The notes: generated by a model from the sequence alone, not told the origin. Positions 28,088-32,794 are shown, counted from the first letter of the stretch. The stretch is 64,000 nucleotides of DNA from Zygnema circumcarinatum SAG 698-1b (GCA_037447605.1 CM074809.1:293628-357627); one strand, 5' to 3'. Numbers and translations: made by a program.

Positions 28088-29597
28088 TTACGCAACTGTG
28101 GCCGCATATAACGGGGAAGCTTTCACCGTATTCCACCATTCCAGCACGCCGGCTACGTCCACAATCATGGCCCGTTTTCTAAAGAAAAATCGACAGGAGG
28201 CGTCTTTGGCGGGGCAGTCGGGGCCCTTCTTTTCAATGATAGCGTGGTGCTCCAACCCCACCCACCGCGAAGCTTCCTGGTAGACCTTCAAGACCCGCGG
28301 GTCGTACTGCTGCAGGCCGAAGGGCACGAGTTCAAGGACCCTCTTTCCCTGCTGCATGAACATCACATGGTTCATAGTTCCGTCGCCCGCAACGGTGATG
28401 AACAGGTCCGCAGAACCCATGTGCAGCACCTGCACCGGAGGAAAAGGAAAGATCGAGATCAACATGAATTAAACAGGAATCAACGTAGAATCAAGGTTTA
28501 AAACCCTAAAAACCCCGGCAGAATGCACAACACACGAGAAAACGCAAGACATAACATGACATAACGATGGAAGTTCACAACACAACATACTTTTACAGGA
28601 AGGAACAATTCCTTGGTTAGGGTTAGTTAGATTGGGGTTAGGGTTAGGGTTAGTTAGATTGGGGTTAGGGTTAGGGTTAGAGTTCGGGTTCGGGTTCGGG
28701 TTAGGATTAGAGTTAGGGTTAGGGTTAGGGTTAGGTTAGGGTTAGGGTTAGGGTTAGGGTTAGGGTTAGGGTTAGGGTTAGGGTTAGGGTTAGGGTTAGG
28801 GTTAGGGTTAGGGTTAGGGTTAGGGTTAGGGTTAGGGTTAGGGTTAGGGTTAGGGTGGGGTTAGGGTTAGGGTTAGGGTTAGGGTTAGGGTTAGGGTTAG
28901 GGTTAGGGTTAGGGTTAGGGTTAGGGTTAGGGTTAGGGTTAGGGTTAGGGTTAGGGTTAGGGGTTAGGGTTAGGGTTAGGGTTAGGGTTAGGGTTAGGGT
29001 TAGGATTAGGGTTACGGTTAGGATTAGGGTTAGGGTTAGGGTTAGGGTTAGGGTTAGGGTTAGGGTTAGGGTTAGGGTTAGGGTTAGGGTTAGGGTTAGG
29101 GTTAGGGTTAGGTTAGGGTTAGGGTTAGGGTTAGGGTTAGGGTTAGGGTTAGGGTTGGGGTTAGGGTTAGGGTTAGGGTTAGGGTTAGGGTTAGGGTTAG
29201 GGTTAGGAGGGTTAGGGTTAGGGTTAGGGTTAGGGTTAGGGTTAGGATTAGGGTTAGGGTTAGGGTTAGGATTAGGGTTAGGGATAGGGTTAGCGTTGGG
29301 ATTAGGGTTAGGGTTAGGGTTAAGGGTTAGGGTTAGGGTTAAGGGTTAGGGTTAGGGTTAGGTTAGGGTTAGGGTTAGGGTTAGGGTTAGGGTTAGGGTT
29401 AGGGTTAGGGTTAGGGTTAGGGTTAGGGTTAGGGTTAGGATTAGGGTTAGGATTAGGGTTAGGGTTAGGATTAGGGGTTAGGGTTAGGGTTAGGATTAGG
29501 GTTAGGGATAGGGTTAGCGTTGGGATTAGGGTTAGGGTTAGGGTTAGGGTTAGGATTAGGGTTAGAGTTAGGGTTAGGGTTAGGGTTAGGGTTAGGG

Positions 29598-29638
<41 letters not shown>

Positions 29639-32600
29639 GGTTAGGGTTAGGGTTAGGGTTAGGGTTAGGGTTAGGGTTAGGGTTAGGGTTAGGGTTAGCA
29701 GAGTGCAGAGAGCCCTTCTTCACCTGTTGGCAGAAATTGGTGAAATTCCGTTCCCCGAGAACGAGCAGCTCACAGTAATCTTGCGGTTGGCAGTGCATCC
29801 GCAACCCTCGAACAAGCTCTTCGAGGTTTTCTATGACTCCGTACCCCGTGTCAGCGTCTCCATGCAGCAGTAAAATCCGTACCGTATCCGGCGGCCTAAC
29901 TGTGAAGCTCCATGAGGCAGAAACTGCCGCTCCGCTAAGACTGTTTCCCTGTTTAACGCTTCCTGTTGACGAATCAGAAACTCCTGCTTGAGGTCCACAG
30001 TAAGCCCAAGCCCTTTCCTGTGCTTCCCTTAAAACAATATTTCTTTCTGCAGCCATTGGTCGATATCTGCGAGTCATTACTGCCCTTTCAAAACAGACAG
30101 GTCGGTTTCCGTTTCGCAGTCTAAAAGGGGCTATATGGTCCCCTAATAGAGCTTTAAAAAGCAGTCTACTCCACTGGGAGACTTTAGTTTCTAAGCTTCC
30201 CCTCCTATAGAACAATGCTCTTGCAGGTTTCATGAATCCGTAATCCGGATAAGGGTAGAACAGATTTGCAAGAATATTTGGAGTATGGAAGCGATCGTCA
30301 AAGCCATACCTACTGTGAAGAACGAGAGTTGTTCCTAGAAGGAGGAGAGCAGAGGGAGGCACACTTCGATAGCTAGTGAGAGCAAATTGGTTAGAGCAGT
30401 TGCTCCCTGTATGACATGCAGGTTGACTGTTATTGCCCTGCACACATAGAACCTGTTTTGGTTTAAGGGGAGACGGCATAACTATGACTTCCGGCATAGA
30501 TAAAACCCTCTGAATGGAAGACATAAACCGGTAGTTTTCATCTGTGCTCGCCACGTGTCCCGGAGGTTCAAAAATTGGCTCAAAATCGAGAGAAGCTTGA
30601 ACCGGCGACTGCACAAAAGCTGCATTGTGGGGATCATGAAAAGCTTCCTTTGTGAATTCGTCATGTTCCATGTACATCTTTGCCTGCGTTGTGTTCCGTA
30701 ATGCCATATCTCCCAGCATTGCTTCCAAATCATTCAAACATGCAGAAAGCATTCGTACTCTCTCTGCTTCTGCAGCTGCGTTTCCATCCACTTCAGTGAT
30801 CCTCTTCTCCCCATCCACTACCAATAGAGGGGGAGTGTTCCCCAGCCGAGTTGCAAGCATGTTAAGCGCGATCGCTGCACAACTCGGCATTCGGTCGACA
30901 TACTCTTTTACCGGCTGCACCACCACCCACACAAAACAATCGAGTTCTATGTCACTTGCAGGTGCAAAAAAAGGTTAAGATTAACTCGCGTGCAGTTTGC
31001 GTACATGGATACTAATCTATAGAGTTGTATGGATTCGTAGAAGTTGATAGAGATCAGCATTACTTCCCACAAACTTGTGAATACCCCCTTGAAAACCTAG
31101 GTGTGCCCCTACTTCCTTCAAACTACCAACTCCCATAAGAAGAAATAATGATCTCGTAAATCCAACCCTAAGGAAGGAGAGCTTTGCACTGAACCAAAAA
31201 CCCTGACCCCCCTAGAGCCATTTAAAGAACAAATTACAAAAAAAAGACTAAAAGCTGAAAAGCACATGACTAAAGCTTCCTTTCTGCATTTTCGCACCTG
31301 CGGTAGAGAGCAGGTGTAGGATTGCAGGTAGTCTCCATGCATGAGGAGAAGCTCCATTCCCACCATTGAATACTCTGTGCGAGGTTGTGCAACGAATACA
31401 AGCTCTCCTGTGAGAGAGCTTCTATAGTGAGCCATCGGAAACAGACCGATGAGTCTATGTGGCTGTTCCATCCACAGTTTGAACGCAGTCTGTAGAACAA
31501 GAGGTGCAACTTTTACGGTGTCATCCGTTACAAGTAAACAGTCCGTCATTAGGGTTTGGATGGGCCGGAGCTGCGCACTGGGGGAGTAATCTGAGCCGTT
31601 CAAAATCTGGACACTTTTGCTGCCGTTCCAATGCAGATGGGAGGCTTCCAATTGGGCGGCGGCGTTCACGGGCAGAATAAAAATTTTATGCACAAAACGG
31701 AGGGCACTGAATGATTGCAGAAGCAGCAGAAGAGAGGAAGGGTTTCCCCGGAAGCGAATAAGAACGCTCGCTTTCCTTGAAACAGGGGCTCCTTTAGCGA
31801 ATTCCATGTAGTCAGTTTGACAGAAAGGATTTGTAACGGCATCACTGGGTAGAACCACTCCCTGTTGCACTAAGAATGTGTACATATCACGGAGAACTTC
31901 CCATCGGAGGTGATCGTATCGTCTGGTTGGTGGATAATGCTTATCCCATATCTCATTCCACCTCTCAAAAGGCCCCTCGAAACGGACTGCTTTGAGGTTT
32001 GTATGCACCCACTCGTTCCATGTAGCGGAATATCCCAGTTTAGAAGGAGCGTTGTAGCCGTAATCTAAGTGATATTCCTGATTCTGAATGGGCCATTCGT
32101 TGAAAAATCCGTTGAAAAACAGCAAATCTTCCGTCTGTGGCACGCGCATATCTGCGGGTCTCTGCTCATACTCGTAAATCAGCTGCCGCAATGTGAACTG
32201 TCCTGGCTCCAAAACCATTAAACCGGGATTAAACCTGTCCGGCAAATCGTTATCTGGAGCAGCACTCAGCTGCTTCCGCTTAAACAAATCGTCGATGTTC
32301 TCCAAAACCAACATTCTGTAGTCCAAATACACCACTGTATCGTATTGGGTCAGAGCCCAAAGCCCTAATTTTGCGAACAAGCAGCTGCCCGCCTCCTCTC
32401 CGTACGACCCATTGGAGGCTCTGTGGACGGCCGTCCGGGCGCTCTCCGGCAAAGCTACAGGCTGAGGGTCAACCATGGCGCCCAGAGCTTCGAACACGTG
32501 GCGGGTGGGGGCGGAGAGGTTCCGTGTCAGTACAACTATGTCGAACGGAGTTTTGGTGGACTTAACGGAGTGCACGAGGACCATGGCGGACTTGGCGGTG

Positions 32601-32794
32601 GCTTCATTGCAGACGACGGTGGCGAAGGCGACGCGGGAGGGGTCGTTGGAGAGGGCGGGGCGAGAGGAGGAGGGGAGGAGGAGGCGGAGGAGAGGGAGGG
32701 AGAGGAGGAGGAGGAGGGCGAGGCGGGAGGCGCGGGAGAGGAGGGAGGGGGAGGGGGAGGCAGGGTAGGACGGATCAGGGCGAGACGGAGCCAT
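28088..32794 (-). CDS. Type II membrane protein with tandem GT8-like, GT64-like and GT61 (DUF563)-like domains; 3 exons, about 1009 aa
   Basis: Exons 32794-31298 (499 codons), 30914-29724 (397) and 28429-28088 (113 plus stop) are all phase 0 with GT-AG. N-terminal hydrophobic anchor [18 protein letters not shown]8: [42 protein letters not shown]64: [39 protein letters not shown]61: [39 protein letters not shown]. Confidence 0.8.
28615..29698 (+). repeat. About 1.1 kb (TTAGGG)n array in intron 2 of the GT fusion gene
   Basis: Mostly perfect 6-mer TTAGGG with scattered variants; it ends 25 nt from the donor at 29723. Confidence 0.95.

Follow-up and report, generated by a model that had tools for sequence, protein, structure and literature searches.

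The stretch analysed here, 64,000 nucleotides of Zygnema circumcarinatum SAG 698-1b DNA (GCA_037447605.1 CM074809.1:293628-357627; hereafter the window), carries on its minus strand, as three long open reading frame (ORF) pieces between positions 32794 and 28088, one gene whose product places three glycosyltransferase (GT) modules, GT8, GT64 and GT61-like, behind a single N-terminal hydrophobic anchor. Using a combination of transcript reads, profile and structure searches, a family tree and substitution ratios, we arrive at a protein that is probably a helper subunit and not a three-step enzyme, the donor-holding residues having been erased in at least two of its modules. The gene is laid out as follows.

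31298..32794, minus strand: exon 1, codons 1-499, encoding the cytosolic tail, the signal anchor, GT8 and the first three fifths of GT64.
30915..31297, minus strand: intron 1, 383 nt, GT..AG, phase 0.
29724..30914, minus strand: exon 2, codons 500-896 (397), encoding the end of GT64, the N-terminal lobe (N-lobe) of the GT61-like module and the start of its C-terminal lobe (C-lobe).
28430..29723, minus strand: intron 2, 1294 nt, GT..AG, phase 0.
28088..28429, minus strand: exon 3, codons 897-1009 and the stop (113 codons + stop), encoding the remaining GT61-like C-lobe.

Joined, the exons give a coding sequence of 3030 nt that is translated into 1009 amino acids (aa) with one terminal stop; every joint is in phase 0, and the splice-site letters read CAG/GTGCGA at the exon 1 donor, GTGCAG/CCG at the exon 2 acceptor and AACAG/GTGAAG at the exon 2 donor. 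Transcript contigs from four RNA runs, taken from four samples and mapped over 29705-32900, match this model exactly. The joint from 30914 to 31298, which skips 383 nt (CT..AC on the plus strand), is present in contigs of all four runs. All four also have contigs whose fit ends at 29721 and which run on with 30 letters matching, in reverse complement, the beginning of exon 3; the fit reaches 29721 because the letters GTG are common to both sides of the exon 2/3 joint. In one run (X1) a single 3538-nt contig spans exon 1, exon 2 and then 882 nt comprising exon 3 and the 3' untranslated region. Read depth is 54-161 over the exons versus 0.5-14 over intron 1, and the exon bases in the RNA contigs are identical to the window, with zero differences. 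The three exons are thus one expressed mRNA, as an earlier note on this DNA, made from the sequence by eye, had proposed when it described three phase-0 exons, an ORF of about 1009 aa and a single gene; separate genes, the possibility it had set against its own claim, are ruled out by transcript contigs that bridge both introns and join all exons.

Two further observations concern the introns. Low-depth contigs (2-14) over intron 1 (30962-31327), present in all four RNA runs, suggest that a small part of the transcripts stays unspliced; within the intron they differ from the window by two single bases and a 1-nt insertion, probably strain variants. Intron 2 houses a telomere-like array of 1.08 kb that is removed exactly by splicing.

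28615..29698, unstranded: telomere-like hexamer array (CCCTAA on the gene strand; Tandem Repeats Finder: period 6, 182 copies, 91% matches, score 1815).

That array, sitting between exons 2 and 3, and the loss of catalytic motifs in all three modules could suggest artefact or decay, be it a mis-joined model, an assembly chimera at the array, or a pseudogene. We hold this to be extremely unlikely: the transcript contigs of four runs cross both introns exactly, and the GT61-like domain is continuous over the exon 2/3 joint, which together rule out the chimera. The pseudogene is taken up with the selection data below.

The modules and the anchor map to the gene as follows.

32672..32731, minus strand: hydrophobic signal anchor, residues about 22-41, from the translation.
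31919..32635, minus strand: GT8 (glycogenin-like) module, residues 54-292 (phmmer versus glycogenin-1, E value (E) 4.7e-27).
30687..31759, minus strand: GT64 module, residues 346-575, split by intron 1 (Pfam PF09258, 69.6 + 26.4 bits).
28124..30695, minus strand: GT61-like module, residues 573-998, split by intron 2 (GT61 profile hmmsearch, E 2e-56).

All three modules are real. Structure searches used the AlphaFold model (mean predicted local distance difference test score 78.6) of P0002, an orthologue of 1008 aa that is encoded on transcript contigs L001 and L002 and is 75% identical to the window protein. The GT8 module scores 24.0 bits against Pfam PF01501, 0.3 under the cut-off of 24.3, and its fold resembles glycogenin with a Foldseek template modelling (TM) score, by target, of 0.70-0.78 (about 0.75); in fold and in overall sequence it is like glycogenin and the plant GUX-PGSIP proteins. 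For GT64, profile positions 11-157 of PF09258 fall in exon 1 and 160-237 in exon 2, and since the match continues across the joint, the exon 1/2 junction lies inside this domain, where the earlier note had put it. The same profile gives 115.6 bits on P0002, the GT64 family profile matches EXT1 (E 1.7e-30), EXTL2 (5e-26), EXT2 and EXTL3, and the fold agrees with EXTL2 at a TM by target of 0.81-0.85.

The GT61-like module was harder to see. PF04577 went unmatched on the separate exon products, because this short model straddles the exon 2/3 joint, and in P0002 it reaches 16.8 bits versus a cut-off of 27. The exon 2 product nevertheless matches PF04577-positive proteins (E 1e-12 to 1e-8), and a GT61 profile built from sixteen of its matches, of which all seven that were scanned carry PF04577 above cut-off, aligns to the fusion family by hhalign with probability 100 and E 1.4e-40; it also matches POMGNT2 and EOGT, which are solved GT61 enzymes. 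By structure, the module resembles an ESM Atlas streptophyte GT61 cluster at TM 0.66 over P0002 residues 594-1008. Foldseek with the whole P0002 model against PDB and Swiss-Prot returned GT8 and GT64 matches only; the GT61 fold surfaced when the Atlas and the AlphaFold DB clusters were searched, and not elsewhere. With phmmer, the exon 2 product matched no PDB sequence even at E 10, and scanning all three exon products against NCBIfam gave no relevant match. The homologue search with exon 1 found one glycogenin only, probably because low-complexity N-terminal words dominated the candidates.

The hydrophobic N-terminal stretch reported in the earlier note is present in the translation and would give the window protein a type II topology; in P0002, AlphaFold places a helix at residues 13-33. 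The N-terminal tail is 34% identical to that of P0002 and evolves without constraint. The tail and anchor, rich in Pro, Ser and Leu, are encoded at 32651-32765 by a low-complexity coding stretch of the (GAG/CTC)n type.

The protein belongs to a family. Searching with exon 2 over 1.84 billion representatives yielded only 57 matches; with two further searches and cluster look-ups, the family divides into three clades. Clade A comprises the window protein, P0002, P0065 (Mesotaenium endlicherianum ME000214S03274) and P0066 (a Closterium sp. Naga37s-1 protein); these orthologues are 54-75% identical to the window protein, share its altered motifs, and form a group with 100/100 support in the maximum-likelihood tree, on a stem 0.81 long with short tips. 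Clade B consists of the Mesotaenium protein ME000090S10179 (P0008) and P0006, and clade C of two Closterium NIES-68 proteins, P0069 (CLOM_g16752) and P0073, with the metagenome proteins P0070 and P0071. A Closterium pair, P0061/P0072, is labelled B by its sites (canonical GT8, degenerate GT64) and groups with P0069 in the tree (87/92). P0008, P0069 and P0006 have the same module order and anchor, with 28-30% identity over nearly the full length, and are unannotated or labelled hypothetical. On the P0006 transcript (L004), the ORF at 797-3010 holds GT64 and GT61 and an upstream overlapping ORF at 1-846 holds a canonical GT8 (DPD, HFSGAAKPW); taken together, the two ORFs make up a complete clade B gene with all three modules, broken by a frameshift that lies either in the assembly or in the transcript.

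Beneath the fusion lies a two-domain core. P0070 and P0071 have the same order, GT8 then GT64, with canonical motifs, and the GT61 profile search did not detect a GT61-like tail in either. The P0071 gene (L003:1001-3715) is intronless; its neighbours on the contig, which comes from a eukaryote in a metagenome, are a kinesin gene on one side and, on the other, a gene with faint sulfotransferase matches. Three AlphaFold DB clusters, A0A0B7NGB7, M1V7C8 and A0A7S3K5Q2, align to GT8 then GT64 (P0002 residues 48-619) and not beyond; to judge by their accession prefixes, these would be from a mucoralean fungus, the red alga Cyanidioschyzon and a marine protist transcriptome, far outside green algae. 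If so, the GT8-GT64 core is widespread in eukaryotes and apparently unstudied. No entry outside Zygnematophyceae in the Atlas or the AlphaFold DB clusters matched all three modules, and our literature searches for GT8, GT64 and GT61 combined or fused turned up no account of the architecture. Two further homologue searches scored 8000 candidates each, so that they speak only weakly for absence from other lineages. The architecture is not unique, since Mesotaenium and Closterium carry both orthologues and paralogues: the GT8-GT64-GT61-like fusion, with a GT8-GT64 core as its base, characterises a whole family in Zygnematophyceae and is not a one-off.

The donor sites of the two GT-A modules lie at the following positions.

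32315..32323, minus strand: GT8 DxD position, D158-Y-R160; the second Asp (glycogenin D104) is lost, LDYRM aligning to glycogenin MDADT.
31958..31984, minus strand: GT8 HxxGxxKPW position, RFEGPFERW, aligning to HFLGQTKPW; H212 is replaced by R and K218 by E.
31517..31525, minus strand: GT64 DxD position, D424-D-T426; the third Asp, which binds Mn (EXTL3 D746), is lost.
30870..30884, minus strand: GT64 NCEDI position, S510-C-A-A-I; the Asp (EXTL2 D246) is lost.

Residues below are listed in the order window protein, P0002, P0065, P0066, with the numbering of glycogenin, EXTL3, EXTL2, EOGT or POMGNT2. In glycogenin, H212 is the metal His and K218 the diphosphate Lys, and in EXTL2 the Asp D246 is important. 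Across clade A, GT8 D104 reads R/L/H/R, the DxD position of the orthologues being DRL, DHH and DPR, and H212 reads R/H/H/R, so that P0002 and P0065, unlike the window protein, keep this His. K218 is E, Q164 is L and S134 is P in all four proteins, as is the motif FERW. Thus the second DxD Asp, K218 and Q164 of glycogenin are lost throughout the clade, and H212 is lost in the window protein too. All five positions (D104, H212, K218, Q164 and S134) are canonical in clades B and C, with DxD readings of DSD, DAD and DGD; the single GT8 exception among these paralogues is P0008 of clade B, which has Pro at D163. In GT64 of clade A, Y670 reads R/R/H/G, R672 N/N/H/D and D746 T/T/G/S, and the WN (N697) and NNRF (N723) motifs are lost; the same five features are lost in clade B and kept in clade C. 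The C-x-D Asp is lost only in the window protein, whereas its direct orthologues and every other family member keep C-x-D, and clade C keeps NCEDI whole. P0069, P0070, P0071 and P0073 keep all listed GT8 and GT64 ligands.

The loss of sites in the family is therefore graded, with clade C keeping both the GT8 and the GT64 sites, clade B those of GT8 only, and clade A neither. The DxD motif is considered essential and universal in GT8 (PMC5203857), and in EXTL3 the Mn ligand is D746 and the UDP/Mn ligands (UDP, uridine diphosphate) are Y670, R672, N697, N723, D745 and D746 (PMC9178029). Judged by alignment to these enzymes, the GT8 and GT64 modules of clade A have lost their Mn2+- and UDP-sugar-binding residues. 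Moreover, of the 19 former donor-site positions of GT8 and GT64, 11 differ between the four orthologues of clade A, a share close to the domain average (the invariant columns amount to 0.43 and 0.38 for the two GT-A modules), which indicates that these donor sites no longer evolve as active-site residues.

This erasure also weighs against one possible biosynthetic role. In land plants IPUT1 (GT8) and then GINT1/GMT1 (GT64) carry out successive sphingolipid steps, and the window protein could be a head-group machine for glycosyl inositol phosphorylceramide (GIPC) that mirrors them; the GT families are the same, and Foldseek against Swiss-Prot does match IPUT1 (E 3.5e-15) and GMT1 (5.7e-15). However, both rank below animal exostosins and glycogenins in that search, among named sequences the one closest to the GT8 module is GUX5-like, and the GT8-GT64 core occurs also in the three proteins that we take, by their accession prefixes, to be non-zygnematophyte. 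With the GT8 and GT64 donor sites erased in clade A, a working two-step GIPC line is unlikely there; a specific GIPC link is not supported, and we regard this reading as very improbable.

The GT61-like module presents a different picture. Its cleft maps to three sites.

30285..30296, minus strand: GT61 N-x-x-H position, D706-R-F-H709; Asp stands in for the Asn of the triad, and the proposed base His remains.
29838..29864, minus strand: GT61 Arg-pair loop, H850-GDADTGYG-858; a Gly/Asp-rich beta1-alpha1 loop with zero Arg/Lys.
28367..28390, minus strand: GT61 HGAQLTN position, A910-GDGTMNH-917; AGDGTMNH aligned to HGAQLTN.

With GT61 enzymes (XAT, XAXT, XYXT, beta1,2-XylT, EOGT and POMGNT2) the module has in common the two-lobe fold, the blocks PVCFE..RR, FCxQV and VLE..P, and the base His. 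It departs from them in the N-R-R triad (EOGT N245, R372 and R377), which serves UDP recognition and has been proposed as a hallmark of active GT61 enzymes (PMC13123520): these positions read D/G/G throughout clade A, where the Arg-pair loop is HGDxDTGYG and the HGAQLTN equivalent is [AS]GDGTMNH in all four proteins. In P0008 and P0006 the triad is partly Arg-rich, and the HGAQLTN equivalent in clades B and C is HGEGL, HGEAL or degenerate. The proposed catalytic base His (POMGNT2 H166, EOGT H248; PMC13123520), H709 in the DRFH of the window protein, is invariant in clade A and lost from the GT61-like domains of the clade B and C paralogues. Six of seven cleft positions are invariant in clade A, compared with 0.51 of columns for the whole GT61-like domain.

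Altered motifs are thus present in all three modules, as the earlier note had claimed, and alignment bears out each of its readings: YLDYR and RFEGPFERW in GT8 (against glycogenin), SCAAI in GT64 (against NCEDI) and AGDGTMNH in GT61 (against HGAQLTN).

We suggest, from this pattern of conservation, that the GT61-like cleft still does something, be it ligand binding or catalysis with a non-canonical donor mode. In the model, the Gly-rich beta1-alpha1 loop could hold a diphosphate via backbone amides. Taken further, the GT61-like module could be the sole enzyme of the protein, with the two GT-A modules reduced to fossils that serve as a stem or an oligomerisation platform. Such an enzyme would fit the module being the best conserved part (80% identity to P0002, with 0.59 of N-lobe columns invariant) and the base His being retained in clade A and not in clades B or C, and the Gly-rich loop could bind a diphosphate. 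Set against it are the replacement of the N-R-R Asn, of both Arg and of the HGAQLTN loop His, and the subthreshold score of PF04577 in P0002; we consider this reading unlikely.

Selection acts on the whole chain behind the anchor. Relative to P0002, nonsynonymous divergence (pN) lies between 0.13 and 0.19 throughout the modules (0.19 for GT8, 0.18 for GT64 and 0.14 for the GT61-like module), with synonymous divergence (pS) of about 0.8, which is saturated, so that the pN/pS ratio of about 0.2 in all three modules stands in for dN/dS, the ratio of nonsynonymous to synonymous substitution rates. The first 53 residues give a pN of 0.49, a pS of 0.36 and a ratio above 1. By these ratios, all three modules are under strong purifying selection and the tail is not. 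A pseudogene is ruled out by a pN/pS of about 0.2; constrained modules and an intact ORF, together with intact orthologues in three lineages, exclude a decaying gene. Canonical orthologues beside a copy under relaxed selection, the outcome that the earlier note had weighed against its claim, are not what we find: the orthologues share the altered motifs, canonical ones being confined to paralogues, and there is no relaxation of selection.

We therefore come to what the protein may do. The reading to which we give somewhat better than even chances is that of an accessory subunit, with two dead GT-A modules and a constrained, divergent GT61-like cleft, serving catalytic paralogues. The GT8 and GT64 modules would be folded but catalytically dead, the GT61-like cleft would retain a role in ligand binding or in catalysis with a non-canonical donor, and the window protein would act as a Golgi accessory subunit (a scaffold, an anchor or a specificity partner) paired with competent paralogues. 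Several points weigh against it. The inactivity of GT8 and GT64 is read from motifs, the Golgi location is predicted from a single feature, the N-terminal anchor, and the partnership with paralogues is proposed purely by analogy. Clade A consists of four full-length sequences only, and GT8 and GT64, though supposedly dead, are under purifying selection just as strong as that on the GT61-like module. Some of the machinery also persists: GT8 D102 and D163 and GT64 D744 and D745 are retained in clade A, some conserved motifs are peculiar to this clade (FERW, EDLxFFN and LPDRFNP), and these Asps and motifs leave room for an unusual donor or a metal-independent mode.

Several of the same features would also fit an active assembly line, in which the three modules transfer sugars in sequence with altered donor binding, for example with Arg side chains replacing Mn2+ in GT8 and a Gly/Asp-rich phosphate loop replacing the Arg pair in GT61. 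The equal selection on all modules, the retained Asps of GT8 and GT64 and base His of GT61, and the clade-specific motifs FERW, EDLxFFN, HGDxDTGYG and GDGTMNH are all compatible with it, and EOGT provides the precedent of a GT61 enzyme that binds UDP without metal or DxD (PMC13123520). However, the independent ligands of donor or metal that have changed number five to seven in each GT-A module, and the replacements at D104, H212, Y670, R672 and D746 differ between orthologues, which is unlike a new conserved chemistry; in addition, the C-x-D Asp of GT64 is missing from the window protein and from no other family member, and experimentally confirmed GT61 enzymes without the Arg pair have not been reported (PMC13123520). 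We judge the assembly line quite unlikely. Between the two alternatives that the earlier note had left standing, the pseudo-enzyme or scaffold is thus favoured for GT8 and GT64, whose ligands are gone and replaced differently from one orthologue to the next, and the assembly line is disfavoured.

The accessory-subunit reading has parallels in known systems. EXT1, EXT2 and EXTL3 (GT47-GT64) resemble the window protein in fusing two or more GT domains and in their GT64 fold, the EXTs being type II Golgi proteins; they differ in having a GT47 partner, another domain order and an active GT64, and in having no GT8 or GT61. The GT47 domain of EXTL3 is evolutionarily inactivated yet retained (PMC9178029). 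Among plant proteins, IRX9 needs no GT activity for its function (PMC4132061), and GAUT1 has GAUT5/6/7 as its anchors (PMC7533613). IRX9/IRX14 and GAUT5/6/7 are thus GT-fold proteins that are needed without activity of their own or that anchor an active paralogue, a behaviour the window protein may share; in contrast to its three modules, they are single-domain proteins. Closer at hand are its own paralogues, in which GT8 sites are canonical (P0008, P0069 and P0006) and, in P0069, those of GT64 as well.

The surroundings of the gene offer no functional neighbour: none was identified in the window, where the ORFs at 23026-24936 (minus strand), 41089-42045 (minus strand), 18334-19194 (minus strand) and 35110-35682 (plus strand) are without a Pfam match. 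At 41593-43773 on the plus strand, a 726-aa ORF with RT_RNaseH (93.6 bits) and integrase zinc-binding (56.4 bits) matches is a pol fragment of a Ty3/gypsy-type retrotransposon.

A bolder proposal, which we offer tentatively and regard as doubtful, is that all, or nearly all, three modules of clade A are pseudo-glycosyltransferases, and that the clade became fixed early in Zygnematophyceae as the obligate non-catalytic partner of its own competent paralogues. Its GT61-like cleft may, moreover, have swapped the Arg pair for a Gly/Asp-rich phosphate loop, which would be a donor mode as yet undescribed for GT61. If this is true, the family would record a stepwise series, from clade C with GT8 and GT64 active, through clade B with GT8 only, to clade A with neither, and would be an independent plant-lineage analogue of the division of labour among EXT1, EXT2 and EXTL3.

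A degenerate clade with a conserved, non-canonical GT61-like cleft is a new variation on the theme of the multi-domain Golgi glycosyltransferase, and that cleft departs from the recently proposed N-R-R rule. For comparative genomics the family carries a caution, as such genes should not be counted as three active carbohydrate-active enzymes. The same three-module protein, with its sites progressively erased and its fold under selection, makes a tractable system for the roles of non-catalytic GT domains, for which scaffolding, anchoring and acceptor handling in Golgi complexes are candidates. Because no other algae are as closely related to land plants as Zygnematophyceae, the Golgi glycan machinery of this group is relevant to the origin of cell-wall and glycoconjugate synthesis in plants.

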